Assembly: GCA_023515725.1 (NCBI GenBank)
Contig: JALDTO010000158.1
Location: forward strand, 310,001 to 374,000
DNA length: 64,000 bases
Direction of reading: 5' to 3'
Origin: Amoeboaphelidium protococcarum X5
Taxonomy: Eukaryota; Fungi; Aphelidiomycota
Shown: piece by piece, positions 2,255-59,098 of the stretch
Numbering within the stretch: position 1 is the first letter of the stretch
Layout of the letters: every line of letters starts with the position of its first letter
The notes under the pieces: generated by a model
The model's input: the letters and a program-made list of their open reading frames with translations, nothing else
Database searches by the model: none
Told to the model about the DNA's origin: nothing
Program-made: the position numbers and the translations under genes

Positions 2255-4029
2255 TCAACGACCTTGTACAATGTCGTCAATTTTAAGGATCATCCTCACA
2301 CACTCCGAAGCCAATTGCACTGAACTAACAGATACCAGGAGTGGTTGAATTACATTTTCTTCCAGTATATTAGTGACGATGCCTTTGCGCACATTGATAC
2401 CAGCAGATTTCTCTCCTTGTGCGTGCTTATTACGCAACTCTGTCACAATCAGTATTGGATCCAGACCGGCGTTCTCAGCCAAAGTCACAGGCACAATTTC
2501 CAGAGCTTGAGCGAAAGCCTCCACGCATTGTGCCTCCATACCGGTTAGACTCTTTGCGTATGCAGACAGCTGGTACGCAATTTCAATCTCTGGAGCACCT
2601 CCACCAGCGATCAATGCCTTATTCTTCACCAGGCAGCGAATGACACACAGTGCATCATGCAGCGATCTTTCAGCCTCCTCCAGAACTAGCTTGTTGGCAC
2701 CACGTACCAGAATAGATACAGTCTTGGGTGCCTACTTTATGCCGGTAACTTTTACAACTTTTGCTCCATCTGACTGCACCTCCTCAACCAAGTCTGCAGA
2801 CCCCAACTTGTCCTCAGTGAAATTGTCAATATCTGCAATAGGTTTGCAGCCCAGAGATTTGCAAATAAACTCAACCTCATCACGTTCAATCTCCTTCACA
2901 GCCATAATCTTGAGCTTGGATAGAAAGTGAAGGGACAGATCATTGACTGCATCTCTCAAGATACTCTTCTGGATCAGCAGAACATTAGCACCAGACTTTT
3001 TGATCTTCTTACAAATGTTCAGAATGTACTAACGCTCCTCCTTGAGAATCTTGTCCATCTAGCGATAATCATTTACCACGATCTGATTATCCATATCTGG
3101 CTTTGGCGGGGACAATTGGAATTGGATCAGTGCAATCTTGGCCTTCTCCACTCTGCTAGGACCACCGGCACTCTTGATAGCACTCTGAGTCAGTACCAAG
3201 CCAGGCACAAGCTCCGTATCATCAATAGTACCACCAACCTTTTGCACGATACGGACATCATTCAGATCGACATTTGTCGCAGTGGCTGGATCGATAACTT
3301 GCATCACAGCATCCACGGCAATAGGTGCAAATAGAGATGAGTACTGCGATACAACCTTGGAATTCAGTGAAGTCGTAGCAGACTTGAGCAGGGATTCGCG
3401 GTCACTCAGGTCCAACTTTACCGACATTTCATTCAGAATTTCCACAGCTTTTACGGAAGCCTTCTGAAAAGACTCAGCGATAGTGGTTGGATGAATATTA
3501 CGATTTAGCAATTTCTGCGCCTGGCTCAACAGAGAACCAGCTAGAACCACAACACTGGTGGTTCCGTCTCCAGCCTCGACATCTTACGCTGCACTCAAAT
3601 CAACCAACTACATTAACCACGTAAAGGTTGCAAGAAAGCGGTTAAAATAATACAATCAAAAGCTTTATACTTACCATCTTCGCCGCCGGGTGAATGACAG
3701 CCATGTGCTTCAGGATAGTGGCACCATCATTGGTAATCAGCACCTGTCCACTTCCAGTCTAAATCATCTTGTCCATACCACGAGGCCCAAGACTTGTACG
3801 TACAGCATCAGCGACGGCTACACATATAAAGAGAAGAAAGGATAATTATAACGCGTAAGTATTAGATCGAAAGTATTATAGTTGAGTTACCTTTAGCTGC
3901 AATGATGTTGCTCAGACGCACCTCAGTAGGCTTCTCCTTGTCTTTGAATGTTCCGCTCTAAGTCTTACTTGCACCAGAACTCTAGGCGCTACTAGATTGC
4001 GTTGATGATGAAGCCATTTCTTATGCCAT
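2255..4029 (-). CDS. CCT4: T-complex protein 1 subunit delta; introns 3818-3890 and 3608-3674
   Basis: [52 protein letters not shown]. Two GT-AG introns restore the frame. Start may be 4029 or 4017. Confidence 0.95.
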
Positions 4030-47387: not shown

Positions 47388-48985
<1,598 letters not shown>

Positions 48986-50684: not shown

Positions 50685-52535
50685 TCAATATCTTTCAACT
50701 TGAACGAGGACTTGGTCATCTCCATCATGAGACGATTGACCATCAAAAGACGCGATTGACATTTGACTGGCGCGACCATTTTTCATGTTGAAAACAGAAA
50801 TCCAGCCAATAGACGATCCAGCAGCATCAATCTCTGTCATTAGCTGATCTACCAATTCTCGAGTCATTAAAGGATTATTAAATACAGCACGCCAAAATTG
50901 CGGAACTTCTACAGCCTACTCACCGTCTTTATATGAGAATGGAGCGTAATCGATCATGAACTTTCCGCGTTTACGCACAAGATGATGCACCTTTCTAGTG
51001 AACACTGACAGCATATTTCGATAAAAATCATAATCAGCACTCTTTACCGCACTTACTAACTTTTGAGTATCACCGCCAAAGTCCCTCACTTAGTTGCGTA
51101 TATTCTCAGGCAGAATTTTGATTAGAGTGTCATAGCTTGGCACCCACCAGAATGTCACATTTGTGAATTAAGGCTAGACAAACGGAATAAATGTACCACA
51201 AAATCGACCACGATCGCTGTTGTTAAGCTAAGTATATAAGTACTTTGCATTGGCCAAAGCGAGATCGACTCGCTGAGAGAAACTACTTTAGCCTTCATAC
51301 GCCCAAGTGAGAAACAGCTTGAAGGCATCAGCTCTCCTTCCACATCCCAAAGTATTCTGTCCGATATCCCAAGAGGACATTCCACTTGGTAATACGGAAC
51401 TTTCTTATTTAGAGGATTAGGGAGACAGAAGACTGTTCATATCATCACTATCAGCATCGGCATCATTATGGAATAGATATCCAACCTTGAGAGAATTAGC
51501 CTGAGCCTTGCTTCCAACTTTAAGCAGCAAAGCGCTACACAGCAATGGGATACCCATGAGCTTATGAGGATTCCACGTAATAGAATCACATAAATCGCTG
51601 CCACTCAAATACACTCGTGACTCTGCATTGGAACTTAATGCCAGAGATCCGCCCCAACTTGCATCCAAATGAACCCACAGTCCGTACTTATGCGCAATAT
51701 TGACACATTCTTTAATATTGTCAAAAGAGCCTAGTACGGTAGTTCCAGCCGTGATATGGAGAAAGAATGGCCTCACCTGAGATTATGAATCTTCAAGAGT
51801 TGATTATAGATACCTCTGTAAATCATCCACGAAGATACATCCATCGATATCACAGTCGATGCCAATGATATTCTGGGGCATCAGTCCGGCAGTCAGACAG
51901 GCATGTTTAACAGAGTAATGAGCACTTGATGAGGTGATAACTTGCAGCGGACCATATCTATTAGCAAAGCGGTATTTGGAGTCAATTTTAGATGATATGT
52001 GCTTAGTTGACACGTACTCGGGAAACATGAAATTGCGCGCAGTAATGAGAGCGTGAAGATTTGAATAAGATCCACCAGGTAAGAAGAAGCCACCACATAC
52101 GCCAGCCTAGTAACCCATCAGCGATCCCAATTTTTATATCATTTTCAGCTCCACCATGGTAAAGAATGGACTAGTGTGATAGACGTGAACATTAGTGTTC
52201 AGAACAGCAATGATCATCTCAGCAATCACACTGACTGGCCGCACGCCTGCGTACAGTTTATCCATAAATCGCGGCGACCACGTACGTATAGAGAATTATA
52301 AAGTCTACTTGATTACATTTTAGAAGATTTCCATATTCTTTTCATCGCCGATAAATTAATCATCAATTAAGTTAAGTAAGTCGTGAAGCTGAGTTTATAA
52401 CTGAGTGGGATTGCGAGCTATATCGTTGATGATCGGTTAATCAACACTTTCACACTCTGCAATATACTTGACTATCAGTGGCCGCACTATATCAAATAGT
52501 TTGTCCATCTCTATGGCATCATTATCTGCAATCAT
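50685..52535 (-). CDS. Group II PLP-dependent decarboxylase (GAD/CSAD-like), 616 aa
   Basis: PRFMDKLYAG, NTNVHVYHTSPFFT.VE, PGGSYSN, AGTTVLGSFD, WVHLDASWGG, SITWNPHKLMG (PLP lysine). Confidence 0.92.
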
Positions 52536-52955
52536 TTTGATATGTTTAACTGATATTCAATCTATTAGATAATTATTAAACTCATTCAGGTTGAAGAAAG
52601 TAAAAAGGGAAGGTTTGATCTGATCTTACTTGGCAACAACAACAACGCAATCACACTCATTCCAATCCATTCGAGCAGACGGAAACGAAATGTATACTAA
52701 AATCTCACGTACTTAAGAATAGACAGAAGTTGATACAATCTTTGGGTGCAGTGATAATACTTCAATAATTTAACGCTTTCCAGGATCACGTTCTGACAGC
52801 TTGATAACTTGTGCTGTTCATTAATTCCTAAATCTGTTTAAGATTAGTAGACTTTAGATTCAAAACTTTCTCTATACCATTCTAATAGAAAGTTATTAGT
52901 CTCGCCACCAAAAAGTAGAGCCAAGTATTAATTTTAAACATCCAGAGTAATAAAA

Positions 52956-53027
52956 AGGCGTTACTCGGATTCGAACCGAGGTTATGCGAGTTAGAGTCGC
53001 GTGTCCTTACCACTAGACGATAACGCA
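52956..53027 (-). tRNA. tRNA with CUA anticodon (reads UAG), probably tRNA-Gln(CUA)
   Basis: Cloverleaf TGCGTTA TC GTCT AGTGGTAA GGAC A CGCGA CT-CTA-AC TCGCA TAAC CTCGG TTCGAAT CCGAG TAACGCC T, followed by a T-run terminator; anticodon at 52992-52994. Confidence 0.9.
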
Positions 53028-53603
53028 TTTTACACAGTAAATACATGAAAATTGAGCCATTGATTGTATATGTATCCAAAGCATCTGTGGTATTATGAAA
53101 ATAAACGATCAAACAAAAGTCTACTTGGATCCCCATCCAAGTGCGGTAAAAATTCAAAATATTTAAATACAATATGTATCATTAGTTTTTGTTAACATTG
53201 GAAATGCTTTTCATAAGTCTTAAGTGTACATACAAAGATTGCTTGGGGTCGCTTTAAGAAACATTACTCATATACGCTAGCCATGTCCCTCTGTCTGGGC
53301 CTTTCATTTAGTCCATCCAAGGCTCAGAACTATTTACAGAACGCAAAGACCATATTCCGCTCAGTCCAGCACAACTATGCTTGATTTATTTCCATTGCGA
53401 TACAACGAACGTGTTTTAAATGACAATTGTTTGCAAATTAATGATATAACTTCTGACAAAAGTAATGTATTCATGAATTGAGATTGATGTCAAGATCACG
53501 GCGCTTAAATCGCGTCTTCTACCAGCTGCCAATCAAAGGAATCTTAACGGCATTTTTGTTGCTGAACTGCCGGAATATATTCAATAAAACTCTTCACTTT
53601 CAT

Positions 53604-53901
53604 TTTAACTTAGGACAGATTATATACACAATAGGAACAGACAGGAAGTTATATACAAGGACTAGGAGTCAAGCAGAGACACTAACAGAAATACGGGAAG
53701 ATAAAATATGTTAATAAGATAAATACTCTAATTAACACGTTAAGTGGAAGAAATCAATGTTCATAAGAGGCGCGCATATATACTGCAGATACTTGCCTAT
53801 TCGAGATCTAATTGATGAAAGAGGCGCGCACTTGAAACAATGTTGATCATCTAAGCCCCATAGAGTCTTCTGTTGATACTTGATCGACGCGTGTGCTAAC
53901 A
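53604..53901 (-). repeat. 3' LTR
   Basis: Identical by eye to 58706-59003; preceded by the PPT on the minus strand. Confidence 0.95.
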
Positions 53902-56900
53902 CTACCCCCCTCTCTAAATGGCAGCTGATTCACAGAACTCCTTGAAGATCCATCATAAAAGTAGTCCTTATTCTTTTCAGTAGCTGCCAGAAAAGGAGCA
54001 AGATCTCTTTCATTAACTGTAGCATCAAATCGTGTTCCATCAGGTGACATCAACCAGTAAGTACCGGGAAATCCAACGTCGACAACATGATATGGTCCCT
54101 TCCAATCGAACTCAAACTTATTCATGCTATGATGCTTTAATTTGACCCAATCACCAATCTTGAAGTAATATTCTGGAGCATTCGGATCAAGATTGTGACG
54201 TCTTCTCATACTTTCAGCCTAAGTCTTAGATCTCTCATATGCAGCAGCTCTGGAATCTCCCATAGCTTCAAAAGTTCTTGCCATAATTTCTCCTTTCTCC
54301 TCAAGTTATTCAATCTCATCCAACGGCTGCAAAGTGCACTCAGGAGGACGTGAATCACCTAGTAAACGAGGCTCCACACCATAAAGCATGTAGAATGGTG
54401 ACTTCTTGGTCACTGCATGAGTTCGACAGCGTATTCCAAACAAAGCCTGCTTCAGATACTCGTCCCATCTTTCCGGACGCCCATTAGTTAAAGTAGTTAT
54501 CGCGTGATTGAGCATAGAATGCATTCTCTCTACCATACCATTAGTTTAAGGGTGATAAGGTGCAGTAGCAATTGGTCTAACGCCTTGCATTCTTTCATAT
54601 TTCGCTATACCATCAGCTAAGAATGACTTCGCTCTATCAGACAAGATCTCATAAGGTGCACCGTAATTCATAAAGATATCATTGTAGAGGAAATCTGCAA
54701 CAGTATCAGAATCTCTAAACTTCACAGCTTTAGCAACCACCCAACGAGTAGCGTAATCAATGGCGGTAATGATGTGATTATTACCAGATTTAGTCGTTTA
54801 CAGATCCTGAACAAAGTCGATACCCCATCTCTCGAATGGGAGGGCAACGGGAGGAATAGGACGCAGAGGAGTCTATTACGTGAACTAATTCTTGGAAGCA
54901 TCAAGTTAGCATTGCGCACACTCTTTAATATACTACTTGATGTCGGCATGCATGTCAGGCCACCAGAAACGGCGTTCAATGAGATCAACTATGGAATCAT
55001 ACTTAAAATGACCAAGCCCATCATGGAATCGAGCTATATGAGCATCTCTATCAGACTTCAGCAAGTAAGGTCTCTTCGATCTATTATCAGCCAGAATTCT
55101 GTGCAACTTTCCATGCACCATGATGAAATGTTGACACTCTTACTTACATTTGTCCAATATGTCACTAGATACATCCAGCCATTCGTCCGTCAACAGGCAA
55201 TGCGCAATTACCAGAGGCCAGTCATGCTCTTCATCAAATTCCTTATTGAGCACATTACTTCTGATCAGCTGACATTACAGATCTTGGTCAAAGGATATGG
55301 AAAACAGATCCAACTCTTACGGAGTCACAAACTTTGAAGGATCTAACAAGCATCTGAAATTGTACTTCTCTTCGTCAACCGCATAATCTGAGCGTCTAGA
55401 GAGCAGATCAGCCTTACCATTTCTGGCACCAGGACGATGTGTCAAGACAAAATCAAATTCAGAGAAGAATAGAGACCATCGCGCCTATCTCCTTGTCAGT
55501 TGCTTTGTGGTCATAAAATATTGCAAACTCTTATGATCAGTCAAGACTGTTACTTGATGCTTACCACCTTGCAGAAAGTGGCGCCATTCTTTGAAGCATT
55601 GATGAATTGCCAGTAATTCCTTGTCATAGATCTCATAATTACGCTCAGCAGGATTGAGTTATCTTGAATAGAAGGCGACAGGTTTGAACTCTCCAGAGTC
55701 AGACTACTAAGACAATACACCAGCAATGCCATAATCAGACGCATCTGCTTCGACCACGAAAGGCTTCTCTTCATCCGGATGACTTAGTACAATATTACTA
55801 TTAAACATCTTCTTTAGTGAATCAAATGCATGCTACTTCTCAGCATCCCAAGTAAAAGCAACATCCTTCTTCAGTAGTTAAGTCAGAGGACGCGTCAGAT
55901 CTGCAAAGTGCGGAATAAATTTACGGTAGAAATTCACAAAGCCGTGGAACATCATCACATCCTTTACATTCTTTGGCGTTGGCCATTGAGTAACAGCTTC
56001 GACTTTTCTAGGATCCATGAGAATGCCATCTTTAGAAAGAATATAACCTAGGAAAGACGTGGAGGATTACGCAAACTTGCACTTTGACAGTTTGCAGTAG
56101 AGCTTGTTACAACGGAGAATCTACAAAACTTCGCGTACATGTTACCAATGTTCCTCTTCATCACCATCAGTATATACAACAATGTCATCCAGATACACCA
56201 CAACAAATTTGCCAATCTAATTCTTAAACAGATCATTCATGAATGTTTGAAATTAAGCAGGAGCGTTAGCCAATCCAAAGGGCATCACCAGAAATTCGTA
56301 CTAGCCATACTTGGTGAGAAATGCGGTTTTAGCTTCATGACCAGCTTTGACACGCAAAAGCTCAAAGGCACCATCCAGGTCCAATGCAGTAAACAACTTT
56401 CCTTTTTAAAGAGAGCGGAATAGATCAGAAATGTTAGGTAGAGGATTCCGATTCTTGATAGTGATCTTGTTCAGACCGCGATAGTCCATGCAGAGACGCA
56501 ACTTGGAATCCTATGTCCACTCAGCCTTACGGACGAAGAAGCAGGGAGCACCATATGGTGATTAACTCTTGCGAATAAATCCACGATCCACATTCTTCTA
56601 CAGCCAGTCGCGCATGACAGCATCTTCTTCCTAAGTCAGTTTGTACAACTTACCAACAGGAGGTTTAGCCCCAGGCTCTAAATCTATAGTGCAGTCTTAT
56701 TCACGATGAGGTGGAAGCTCATTCAGCTGTTGCTTCATAAATACATCGCCAAACTCTTGTATCTGGTCAGGAAGAACAGGATCACTTATTTCAGTATCCT
56801 TTTACATTAAGCAAATCTACTCTTGAATGATATCTGATAGGCAATGATAATTTATGATTCCATCTTCATCCTCATAGACAAATCCTGGAATTATGGTATT

Positions 56901-57725
56901 CTCTTCGTCCTTCTAATACATGTCTAATACAGTGGCATTAATGCAAACAAGAGGCGGAGTAGAGATGGAGTCAGAAACAGAAGTAGAAGCGTTAATAGTA
57001 GTAGACTCAGTTAAAGTAACAGGCAGAGTAGAGACAGAGGCAGAGTTAGAATCAGAAACAGAATCAACAACAGTAGAAACAGAGACATGTTCGGAGACAG
57101 AGACAGACTTATTATCAGCAACAGTAGAAACAGAGACATGGTCGGAGACAGAGACAGACTTATGATCAGCAACAGTAGAAACAGAGACGTGATCGGAGAC
57201 AGAGACAGACTTATGATCAGCAGAGACAGAAAGATCACTAACGGAACTGGACTAGAGGTCTGATACTTAATCGGGCTACAATGATATTAACTCCGGCGAG
57301 GTTACGCAATTAGTTAAACAGTACTATGAACCAAATTTTACAGTCACAGCTGACCAATCAATATCAGGATTATGCATTCTTAACCATGAGAAACCAATAA
57401 TTCCCTTTTGAGCAAGTTTTATAACGTAGAATGTGACCGTCTCAATATGATTAGCTATATGCATTTACAGCGGAACAGTTTGATGAGTAATAAAGGTCTT
57501 AGTATTACGGTCACCATCAGCAAAGGATACACAGACTTTACGCTTGCATTTCACTACAGGAATTTCGAACTCGGCCACTAAACTTTCATCTAAAAAGCAA
57601 CTATCAGCGCCTGAATCTAAAAGCATAGGGACAGAAATTTCTTTAGCTCCATATTTTAAGACTGTGGGAAGGATCATTTTAGTAGAGACCTCATAATTCA
57701 GACTTAAAATATATTTCTCAGTTAG
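53847..57725 (-). CDS. Retrotransposon Pol (protease, RT, RNase H, integrase), in frame with Gag
   Basis: LLDSGA; [13 protein letters not shown]; ADASD..YDKELLA..TDHKSL; HHCC, WGIDF..SDRA..NGMVER; GPY motif; stop TGA lies inside the 3' LTR. Confidence 0.93.
57060..57235. repeat. 51-bp tandem repeat (about 3.4 copies) encoding a 17-aa Ser/Val-rich repeat in the PR-RT linker
   Basis: AGCAACAGTAGAAACAGAGAC(A/G)TG.TCGGAGACAGAGACAGACTTAT(G/T)ATC repeats; peptide [17 protein letters not shown]. Confidence 0.9.
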
Positions 57726-58685
57726 TCATCCTTAAGTACGAGTATTCAATAACGAGCAATTAGCCTTGATATGACCAGAGCCACCACAATATAGACACAG
57801 TCTCTAAGACAAACGACGCTGACGCTCCTCTGCGGACAACGGCCCACGCTTAACTTGATCAATATCCATATTATCTGGATTAGGAGGGCCAGGAGTAGAG
57901 GCAGACGAATTGGTAGAAGCAGAGGCCGACTAAGTGGAGGAAGACCTGACAGATGAATACTACTTCTTAGAGTAGTTACTACCACCGCTTAAAGCTTTCA
58001 TGTCAGCAACTCGTTCACCACAACGGATTGCAAGTTTCACCAGATCACTTAGTGTACTAGGCTCATCAGAGGACAACATCATTATGCGTACATCATTGTT
58101 AAGTCCTTCTTTAAATTCGGACTTCAGCGAGATATCATTCCACCCTATTCCAGACGACAGGAATCTAAACTCTGCCGCATAGGCGGAAACCGTCATTGAG
58201 CCTTACTTTAGTCTTCTCAGAGCTTTCTCATCGCAGTCTCTTTGGCTAGCTGGACACAACCACTCCTTGAAACACGCGATGAAGGTGTCAAAGGACTTCA
58301 ACTCTTCTTTATACTGAGAGGGATTCTCAATAATAGGGTCGTAGTACTTGCTGGCTTTCTTAGTCAGAAGCGATCCAACAGTCTTAATCTTAATGTCGTC
58401 GGTGGCAAAGGCGTCCGGATGTAACTCAAACATGAGTTAACACTAATTTACAAACGAACGGAACTCCGACACAGATCCATCAAACTTTTCAGGATATATT
58501 ATTTGCTTCTTCTATGAAGTCGGGGCGACCAGAGGTATAGCAGGCGGCACAGCGGTATAAGCAACATGCGTTTACAATTATTGCATTTAATCAGATAAAT
58601 ATTGTATCTGTTACTGGAGTTGTTGATTAATCAACATCAACTGATTAACATCAACGGCAGGAGTTTAGGAACCAGAACCACTCAT
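57726..58685 (-). CDS. Retrotransposon Gag, 319 aa, with CCHC zinc knuckle
   Basis: ATG 58685; PEKFDGS, LKQGSMTVSAYAAEF, CLYCGGSGHIKANC; ends at TGA 57726-57728. Confidence 0.9.
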
Positions 58686-58705
58686 AATATCAGAACGTGT
58701 TAAGT

Positions 58706-59003
58706 TTTAACTTAGGACAGATTATATACACAATAGGAACAGACAGGAAGTTATATACAAGGACTAGGAGTCAAGCAGAGACACTAACAGAAATACGGGA
58801 AGATAAAATATGTTAATAAGATAAATACTCTAATTAACACGTTAAGTGGAAGAAATCAATGTTCATAAGAGGCGCGCATATATACTGCAGATACTTGCCT
58901 ATTCGAGATCTAATTGATGAAAGAGGCGCGCACTTGAAACAATGTTGATCATCTAAGCCCCATAGAGTCTTCTGTTGATACTTGATCGACGCGTGTGCTA
59001 ACA
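58706..59003 (-). repeat. 5' LTR with TATA-like TATATAT near 58878-58884
   Basis: Starts TGTTAGCAC on the minus strand; duplicate of 53604-53901. Confidence 0.95.
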
Positions 59004-59024
59004 TTCATCCAAATACCTCAAAAA

Positions 59025-59098
59025 GGTGCTATGTTCTAATTCGGTTAGGAATAGAGACTCTGACTCTCTCAATCTCGGTTCAAATCCGAGTAGCACCT
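59025..59098 (+). tRNA. tRNA-Gln(CUG)
   Basis: GGTGCTA/TAGCACC acceptor stem, anticodon arm AGAGA CT-CTG-AC TCTCT, T arm CTCGG TTCAAAT CCGAG, U discriminator, TTTTT terminator. Confidence 0.95.

Follow-up and report, generated by a model that had tools for sequence, protein, structure and literature searches.

The closest described systems include those of ciliates. Tetrahymena thermophila and other ciliates in which UAR (UAA and UAG) is read as glutamine possess the pair tRNA-Gln(CUA) and tRNA-Gln(UUA) (Hanyu et al. 1986, as summarised in PMC11687900), and predicted suppressor tRNAs of other reassigned nuclear codes have been described, for example the tRNA-Leu(CUA) of phyllopharyngean ciliates (PMC11687900) and those of the rhizarian exLh and Iotanema (PMC5304391). 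In the aphelid Amoeboaphelidium protococcarum, UAR has likewise been reported to encode glutamine (Karpov et al. 2013, cited in PMC5304391 and PMC11687900); the codon reassignment is identical to that considered here, and what is reported, as far as these citations convey it, is the code and not the tRNA genes. The gene that forms the subject of the present analysis lies on the minus strand of a 64,000-nucleotide stretch of contig C158 of A. protococcarum X5 (hereafter, the window). We hold with high confidence that positions 52956 to 53027 specify a functional nuclear tRNA-Gln(CUA) which decodes UAG, within a nuclear code in which UAA and UAG represent glutamine and UGA is the sole stop codon. 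Because that code is already published for A. protococcarum, such a tRNA is an expected component, and it is in itself unsurprising. It nonetheless identifies the decoding component of a stop-to-sense reassignment, of which there are few outside the ciliates, and the CUA gene and its UUA counterpart provide concrete reagents for studying how two stop codons changed meaning in a fungus-related lineage.

Compared with the situation in Tetrahymena and other ciliates, the A. protococcarum locus presents the same stop-reading pair of CUA and UUA tRNAs, which would similarly be derived from a normal tRNA-Gln and would serve a nuclear code with UGA as sole stop; in both cases UAG alone is the expected target of the CUA tRNA, whereas its UUA counterpart should read UAA as well as UAG. 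It differs in its independent origin in a fungus-related lineage, in the single-copy status of each gene per locus copy, in the clustering with tRNA-Gln(CUG), in the U1.C72 non-pair and 4-bp anticodon stem of both genes, and in being known from genes alone. The phyllopharyngean, exLh and Iotanema cases follow the same logic, i.e., a cognate tRNA present in the genome which most resembles the isoacceptors of the newly assigned amino acid, although they involve another amino acid and another lineage, and UAG alone is reassigned there. The features of the gene are as follows.

52956-53027, minus strand: tRNA gene with anticodon CUA (tRNA-Gln-like, for UAG), 72 nt including discriminator U73, from Rfam, ARAGORN and folding
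52992-52994, minus strand: anticodon CUA (tRNA positions 34 to 36), complementary to UAG; the plus strand reads TAG
53010-53020, minus strand: A-box-like TCGTCTAGTGG (tRNA positions 8 to 18), a predicted Pol III internal promoter element, from the sequence against the consensus
52967-52977, minus strand: B box GGTTCGAATCC in the T arm, from the sequence, with a perfect match to the consensus
52952-52956, minus strand: run of five T (U73 plus four T) directly after the tRNA gene, a predicted Pol III terminator, from the sequence

The preliminary description of this DNA had claimed a full cloverleaf with anticodon CUA, and on this point ARAGORN (a tRNA with anticodon cta at 52955 to 53028, minus strand), the Rfam model RF00005 (53027 to 52956 against model positions 1 to 71; 52.1 bits, E value of 2.7e-8, with a gathering score of 29) and the minimum-energy fold all agree. 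The fold of the 72 nt comprises a 6-bp acceptor stem (positions 2 to 7 with 66 to 71), a 4-bp D stem, a 4-bp anticodon stem and a 5-bp T stem. Two non-pairs, U1.C72 and C27.A43, bring the Rfam score down to 52 bits. As there is no long variable arm, Leu and Ser types are excluded. The A-box-like element was judged against the consensus TRGCNNAGTGG. Transcription by Pol III would be expected to proceed from the internal A and B boxes and to end at the T5 run.

The unpaired first base of this gene could matter more than the tRNA itself. 5' editing of tRNAs by Thg1-like 3'-5' polymerases is described for the mitochondria of Acanthamoeba, Dictyostelium and chytrid fungi, where a free 5' base with a fixed 3' partner was the gene-level signature that led to its discovery (PMC4284800, PMC6471195). 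The 1:72 position was surveyed, with a check of the register, across all recovered tRNA genes, among which are 42 distinct nuclear sequences (loci L001 to L065); of 1171 candidates in the RF00005 search behind this census 63 were scored, and the tRNA-Gln(CUG) of the window was not among them, so that the census is a lower bound. In 27 of these 42 sequences bases 1 and 72 fail to pair, while pairs 2 to 7 are intact; C occupies position 72 almost throughout, with A in Asn and Glu. Of 18 comparisons within isoacceptors, 11 show a difference at position 1, which varies far more than any other position, and none at position 72; four of the comparisons show a difference at position 1 only, namely Ala(UGC) with G/U, Ile with G/U, Phe with C/U and Asn with U/A. 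Indispensable tRNAs such as Phe, Thr, Trp and Ala(AGC) carry the non-pair, which therefore does not identify a pseudogene, and the U1.C72 of tRNA(CUA) is, judged from the genes, not decay but a trait common to most nuclear tRNA genes of this organism. An explanation of U1.C72 as an identity adaptation of stop-reading tRNAs, in which a weak 1:72 pair would aid GlnRS and so make up for the altered anticodon, was considered and rejected, given that such non-pairs also occur in Ala, Arg, Asn, Glu, Ile, Lys, Phe, Thr and Trp genes.

The combination of a variable base 1 with a fixed base 72 suggests a 5'-end repair of nuclear tRNAs. As in mitochondrial 5' editing, it is the 5' strand of the acceptor stem that carries the mismatches and varies, whereas the 3' strand is conserved and could act as template. 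The genome also carries a second Thg1-family gene, which is divergent. The present case differs in that nuclear genes are involved, that position 1 only, rather than positions 1 to 3, is affected, and that the evidence comes from genes alone. The relevant loci, as found by profile matches, are listed below.

C154:17455-17979, C162:219178-219701, C154:724337-724846 and C205:152558-153076: PF04446 (Thg1 family) loci of two kinds, each in two copies

One kind scores strongly against PF04446 (116 bits) and the other is divergent (48 and 38 bits), and on this profile match the divergent locus is regarded as a candidate Thg1-like templated 3'-5' polymerase. We propose that in most nuclear tRNA genes of this organism the encoded base 1 drifts freely because it is removed and rebuilt on the template of position 72, probably by the divergent Thg1-family enzyme, with RNase P possibly cutting at the helix boundary and thereby leaving the substrate; we regard this as a serious possibility which falls slightly short of being probable. 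Alternatively, a frayed 1:72 end may simply be tolerated by the organism. If base 1 were repaired in mature tRNAs, cytosolic tRNAs would share a process known so far only from mitochondria, and this would be the first system of 5'-end editing or repair for cytosolic tRNAs encoded in the nucleus. A cytosolic function for Thg1-like proteins, an open question for Dictyostelium TLP4 (PMC6471195), would follow as well. A search of the available literature for 5' editing on nuclear-encoded tRNAs found no later report of it.

A separate 28.4-kb contig, C346, carries an AT-rich cluster of Trp, Gln, Asn and Tyr tRNA genes (L008, L017, L044 and L060) and looks mitochondrial. Its Trp gene has U1.U72 and its Asn gene U1.C72 together with another acceptor mismatch, a pattern resembling chytrid-type mitochondrial 5' editing.

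The relatives of tRNA(CUA) were sought among 50 distinct tRNA sequences from the genome, an incomplete set without nuclear Tyr, Leu, Glu(CUC), Val, Pro and Asp; within it the closest sequence is a tRNA with anticodon UUA (92 to 93% identity), followed by Gln(CUG) (70%) and Gln(UUG) (69 to 72%), with Thr next at 59%. In the recovered set, U73 is confined to Gln(UUG), Gln(CUG), Cys and the CUA and UUA tRNAs. The acceptor stem of tRNA(CUA) departs from that of Gln(UUG) solely by G1>U and by the compensated change of C5:G68 to U5:A68. The derivation from a glutamine tRNA put forward earlier on the basis of the T stem, anticodon-loop flanks and discriminator is supported: the nearest standard relatives are Gln(CUG) and Gln(UUG), U73 is common to the Gln tRNAs, the T stem (CTCGG/CCGAG) is identical to that of tRNA-Gln(CUG), and the loop arrangement CT-NNN-AC is also present. 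The body of tRNA(CUA) is, on these comparisons, Gln-like, and charging by glutaminyl-tRNA synthetase would be expected, as U73 and the Gln-type body suggest. Once charged, the tRNA would insert glutamine at UAG.

The UUA partner, for which the preliminary description had recommended a genome search, was located at C158:383536-383608 and C200:16432-16504 (Rfam, 48.6 bits). On C158 it lies outside the window, on the same strand as the CUA gene and 20.5 kb beyond it, and it contains two non-pairs, U1.C72 as in the CUA gene and C27.U43; a T5 run follows two bases past its end. Pattern scans of the whole assembly (23.6 Mb, about 40% GC) found no other tRNA with a CUA or UUA anticodon, so each copy of the locus holds a single gene of either kind. 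The tRNA-Gln(UUA) would be expected to serve UAA and probably also UAG by wobble. A scan of metagenomes with the anticodon arm and B box returned 39 loci (L070 to L108), none with the anticodon stem or acceptor of tRNA(CUA), in a search from which records of this genome or near ones were possibly left out. These loci, from rumen, soil and water metagenomes, were rejected as relatives: some resemble the 3' ends of tmRNA-like genes, others are unrelated tRNAs with CUA or UUA anticodons, apparently suppressor tRNAs of phages or bacteria and tRNAs from rumen samples.

The neighbourhood of the CUA gene bears on its origin and contains two further features.

59025-59098 (to 59099 in ARAGORN), plus strand: tRNA-Gln(CUG), divergent from the CUA gene, with G1:C72 and U73, from Rfam (57 bits) and ARAGORN
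53604-59003, minus strand: LTR retrotransposon between the two tRNA genes, from its LTRs, target-site duplication and the empty site on C200

The LTRs are about 298 bp in length, 100% identical to each other and reported at 53603 to 53901 and 58705 to 59003; they are flanked by a TTCAT target-site duplication (53599 to 53603 and 59004 to 59008), which places the insertion 17 to 21 bp upstream of tRNA-Gln(CUG). The element contains gag/pol open frames under a TGA-only code. On its own strand the LTR ends read TG...AA, and its coding region includes a tandem repeat (window 57003 to 57206) with 51-bp spacing, in which three overlapping 102-nt copies are 71 to 73% alike. Contig C200 harbors the empty site, with a single TTCAT, no element, and the CUA and CUG genes 617 bp apart. 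It had been stated that removal of the retrotransposon leaves the two divergent tRNA genes about 600 bp apart, and both the window arithmetic (592 bp) and the empty site agree with this.

The further suggestion that this arrangement records a local duplication of tRNA-Gln(CUG) followed by a change of anticodon is on weaker ground. The clustering fits an old local origin, and the presence on both contigs of three Gln-family genes (CUA, CUG and UUA) in a span of about 20 kb suggests an old local history. For the adjacent tRNA-Gln(CUG) as the source, with G36>A as the subsequent change, it can be said that the genes are adjacent and divergent in both locus copies, that the T stem and the anticodon-loop flanks are identical, and that one change turns CUG into CUA. 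However, the CUA gene is no closer to its CUG neighbour (70%) than to the unlinked Gln(UUG) (69 to 72%), in the acceptor stem it is separated from Gln(UUG) by three changes and from Gln(CUG) by five, and the order of events is beyond the resolution of four 72-nt sequences. The role of Gln(CUG) as direct parent, which finds no backing in these comparisons, is consequently considered rather unlikely. The clear and, by all indications, recent duplication is instead that between the CUA and UUA genes, which are 93% identical and 20.5 kb apart; it is well supported and involved a C34/U34 change. The preferred reading is that these two genes are duplicates of each other which would have arisen from a standard tRNA-Gln via a change of G36 to A.

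The locus is present twice in the assembly. Contig C200 carries the UUA (16432), CUG (30740) and CUA (31431) genes in the same relative order as C158, with flanks 83 to 91% identical to the window, and every gene examined was present twice (C158 versus C200, C244 versus C136 and C264 versus C207). Between such paired contigs the intergenic DNA is approximately 80 to 90% identical and coding differences are mostly synonymous, and the assembly is accordingly described, from these alignments, as two diverged genome copies (homeologues or deep haplotypes). The published A. protococcarum assembly (24.7 Mb, 40.5% GC) contains gene pairs which are approximately 92% identical (PMC10608142), and the C158/C200 duplication fits these paired proteins.

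Both stop-reading tRNA genes are unchanged between the two copies (72/72 positions for CUA and 73/73 for UUA), and tRNA-Gln(CUG) has an identical copy on C200. In contrast, alignment of the 400-bp flanks of the CUA gene over 753 bases reveals 127 mismatches (about 17%), a rate at which the probability of no change in the 72 bases of the gene is approximately 1.6e-6. A Logan contig from another sample or strain under the same organism label displays 14 differences from the window over 290 bases on the 3' side, whereas the gene itself is unchanged. As the stop-reading tRNA genes are 100% identical between copies whose flanks differ by approximately 17%, they are taken to be under purifying selection; gene conversion could in principle also be a source of perfect identity between locus copies.

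This conservation weighs heavily against a reading in which the CUA gene is a decaying copy and UAG is read by tRNA(UUA) alone through wobble. Such a reading could draw on the two non-pairs and the modest Rfam score, and on Tetrahymena, where the tRNA with a UUA anticodon reads both UAA and UAG (Hanyu et al. 1986, in the summary given in PMC11687900). Against it, the gene is unchanged between locus copies and in the contig of another strain, its promoter boxes and terminator are intact, and U1.C72 is shared with the UUA gene and belongs to the 1:72 non-pairing that is widespread among the nuclear tRNAs, indispensable ones included. The codon that it would serve is, moreover, common: in 30 long frames of the window, TAG occurs at 17.2 per 1000 codons, as frequently as CAG (15.7), next to 18.6 for TAA and 17.2 for CAA, such that UAG makes up about a quarter of glutamine codons. 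Decay of the CUA gene is thus considered very unlikely, and a functional tRNA-Gln(CUA) is retained as the preferred reading.

There remains the evidence for the code itself. Under the standard code the window contains almost no long open reading frames, whereas it is densely packed with them if TGA is the only stop. Long frames arise under any single-stop code, so that statistics on frame length alone cannot settle the code and homology is needed. In the following three genes of the window, stop-free pieces match successive parts of one Pfam profile and lie in one frame across the intervening TAG and TAA codons.

2258-3655, minus strand: CCT chaperonin
47391-48953, minus strand: glutathione reductase
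50688-52556, minus strand: PLP decarboxylase

The glutathione reductase frame was aligned to 34 homologues of at least 300 aa, with X placed at each of its nine TAG and five TAA codons. At codon 355 (TAG) the column holds Q in 21 of the 30 homologues having a residue there, and at codon 488 (TAA) in 18 of 21; these are the two breaks which fall on well-conserved columns, and both correspond to glutamine.

The release factor eRF1 provides a second line of evidence. In the copy on C244, one stop-free piece ending in ...GRGG corresponds to human eRF1 residues 81 to 184 and the next piece to residues 186 to 209, from which it follows that the residue equivalent to human Gln185 of the universal GGQ motif is encoded by TAG (L068:2002-2004); the second copy, on C136, has CAG at this position. 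The two copies differ in 51 of 438 codons, of which 50 are synonymous only if TAR is glutamine, and the TAR swaps between them are confined to TAG with CAG (three), TAG with CAA (one) and TAA with TAG (two). TGA closes both eRF1 and glutathione reductase at the expected C-termini, where their homologues end. The eRF1 motif, the glutathione reductase columns and the exchanges between TAR and CAR thus uphold the earlier view that TAG and TAA are sense codons in this genome, and assign them to glutamine.

In E. coli GlnRS, the anticodon is a major identity element. Although the anticodon of tRNA(CUA) is altered at position 36, which might favour charging with an amino acid other than glutamine (e.g., Glu, Lys, Tyr or Leu), this is regarded as extremely improbable, considering that TAG encodes the invariant glutamine of GGQ, that it swaps only with CAG, CAA or TAA between eRF1 copies under strong purifying selection, that Q prevails at the conserved glutathione reductase columns, and that the tRNA combines a Gln-like body with U73 and lacks a long variable arm.

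The stop-recognition motifs of the A. protococcarum eRF1 read AAVNIKS (TASNIKS in human) and YQCDNRF (YLCDNKF in human), and the Q of YQCDNRF is encoded by TAG in the second copy. The best matches to PF03463, L066 (C264:1263764-1264162) and L067, were rejected as eRF1 since they are Pelota/Dom34-like, the true eRF1 being represented by L068 and L069; L066 also contains in-frame TAG and TAA codons, and its Pfam eRF1_1 score lies above that of the true eRF1. In Logan run X10, the kind of which is unrecorded (none is on record as RNA), a single low-depth contig of 210 nt (52815 to 53024) crosses the tRNA gene and extends 140 nt beyond its terminator. Contigs of the same run from window positions 51800 to 53039 cover the PLP decarboxylase gene deeply and end at the gene end, as RNA would.
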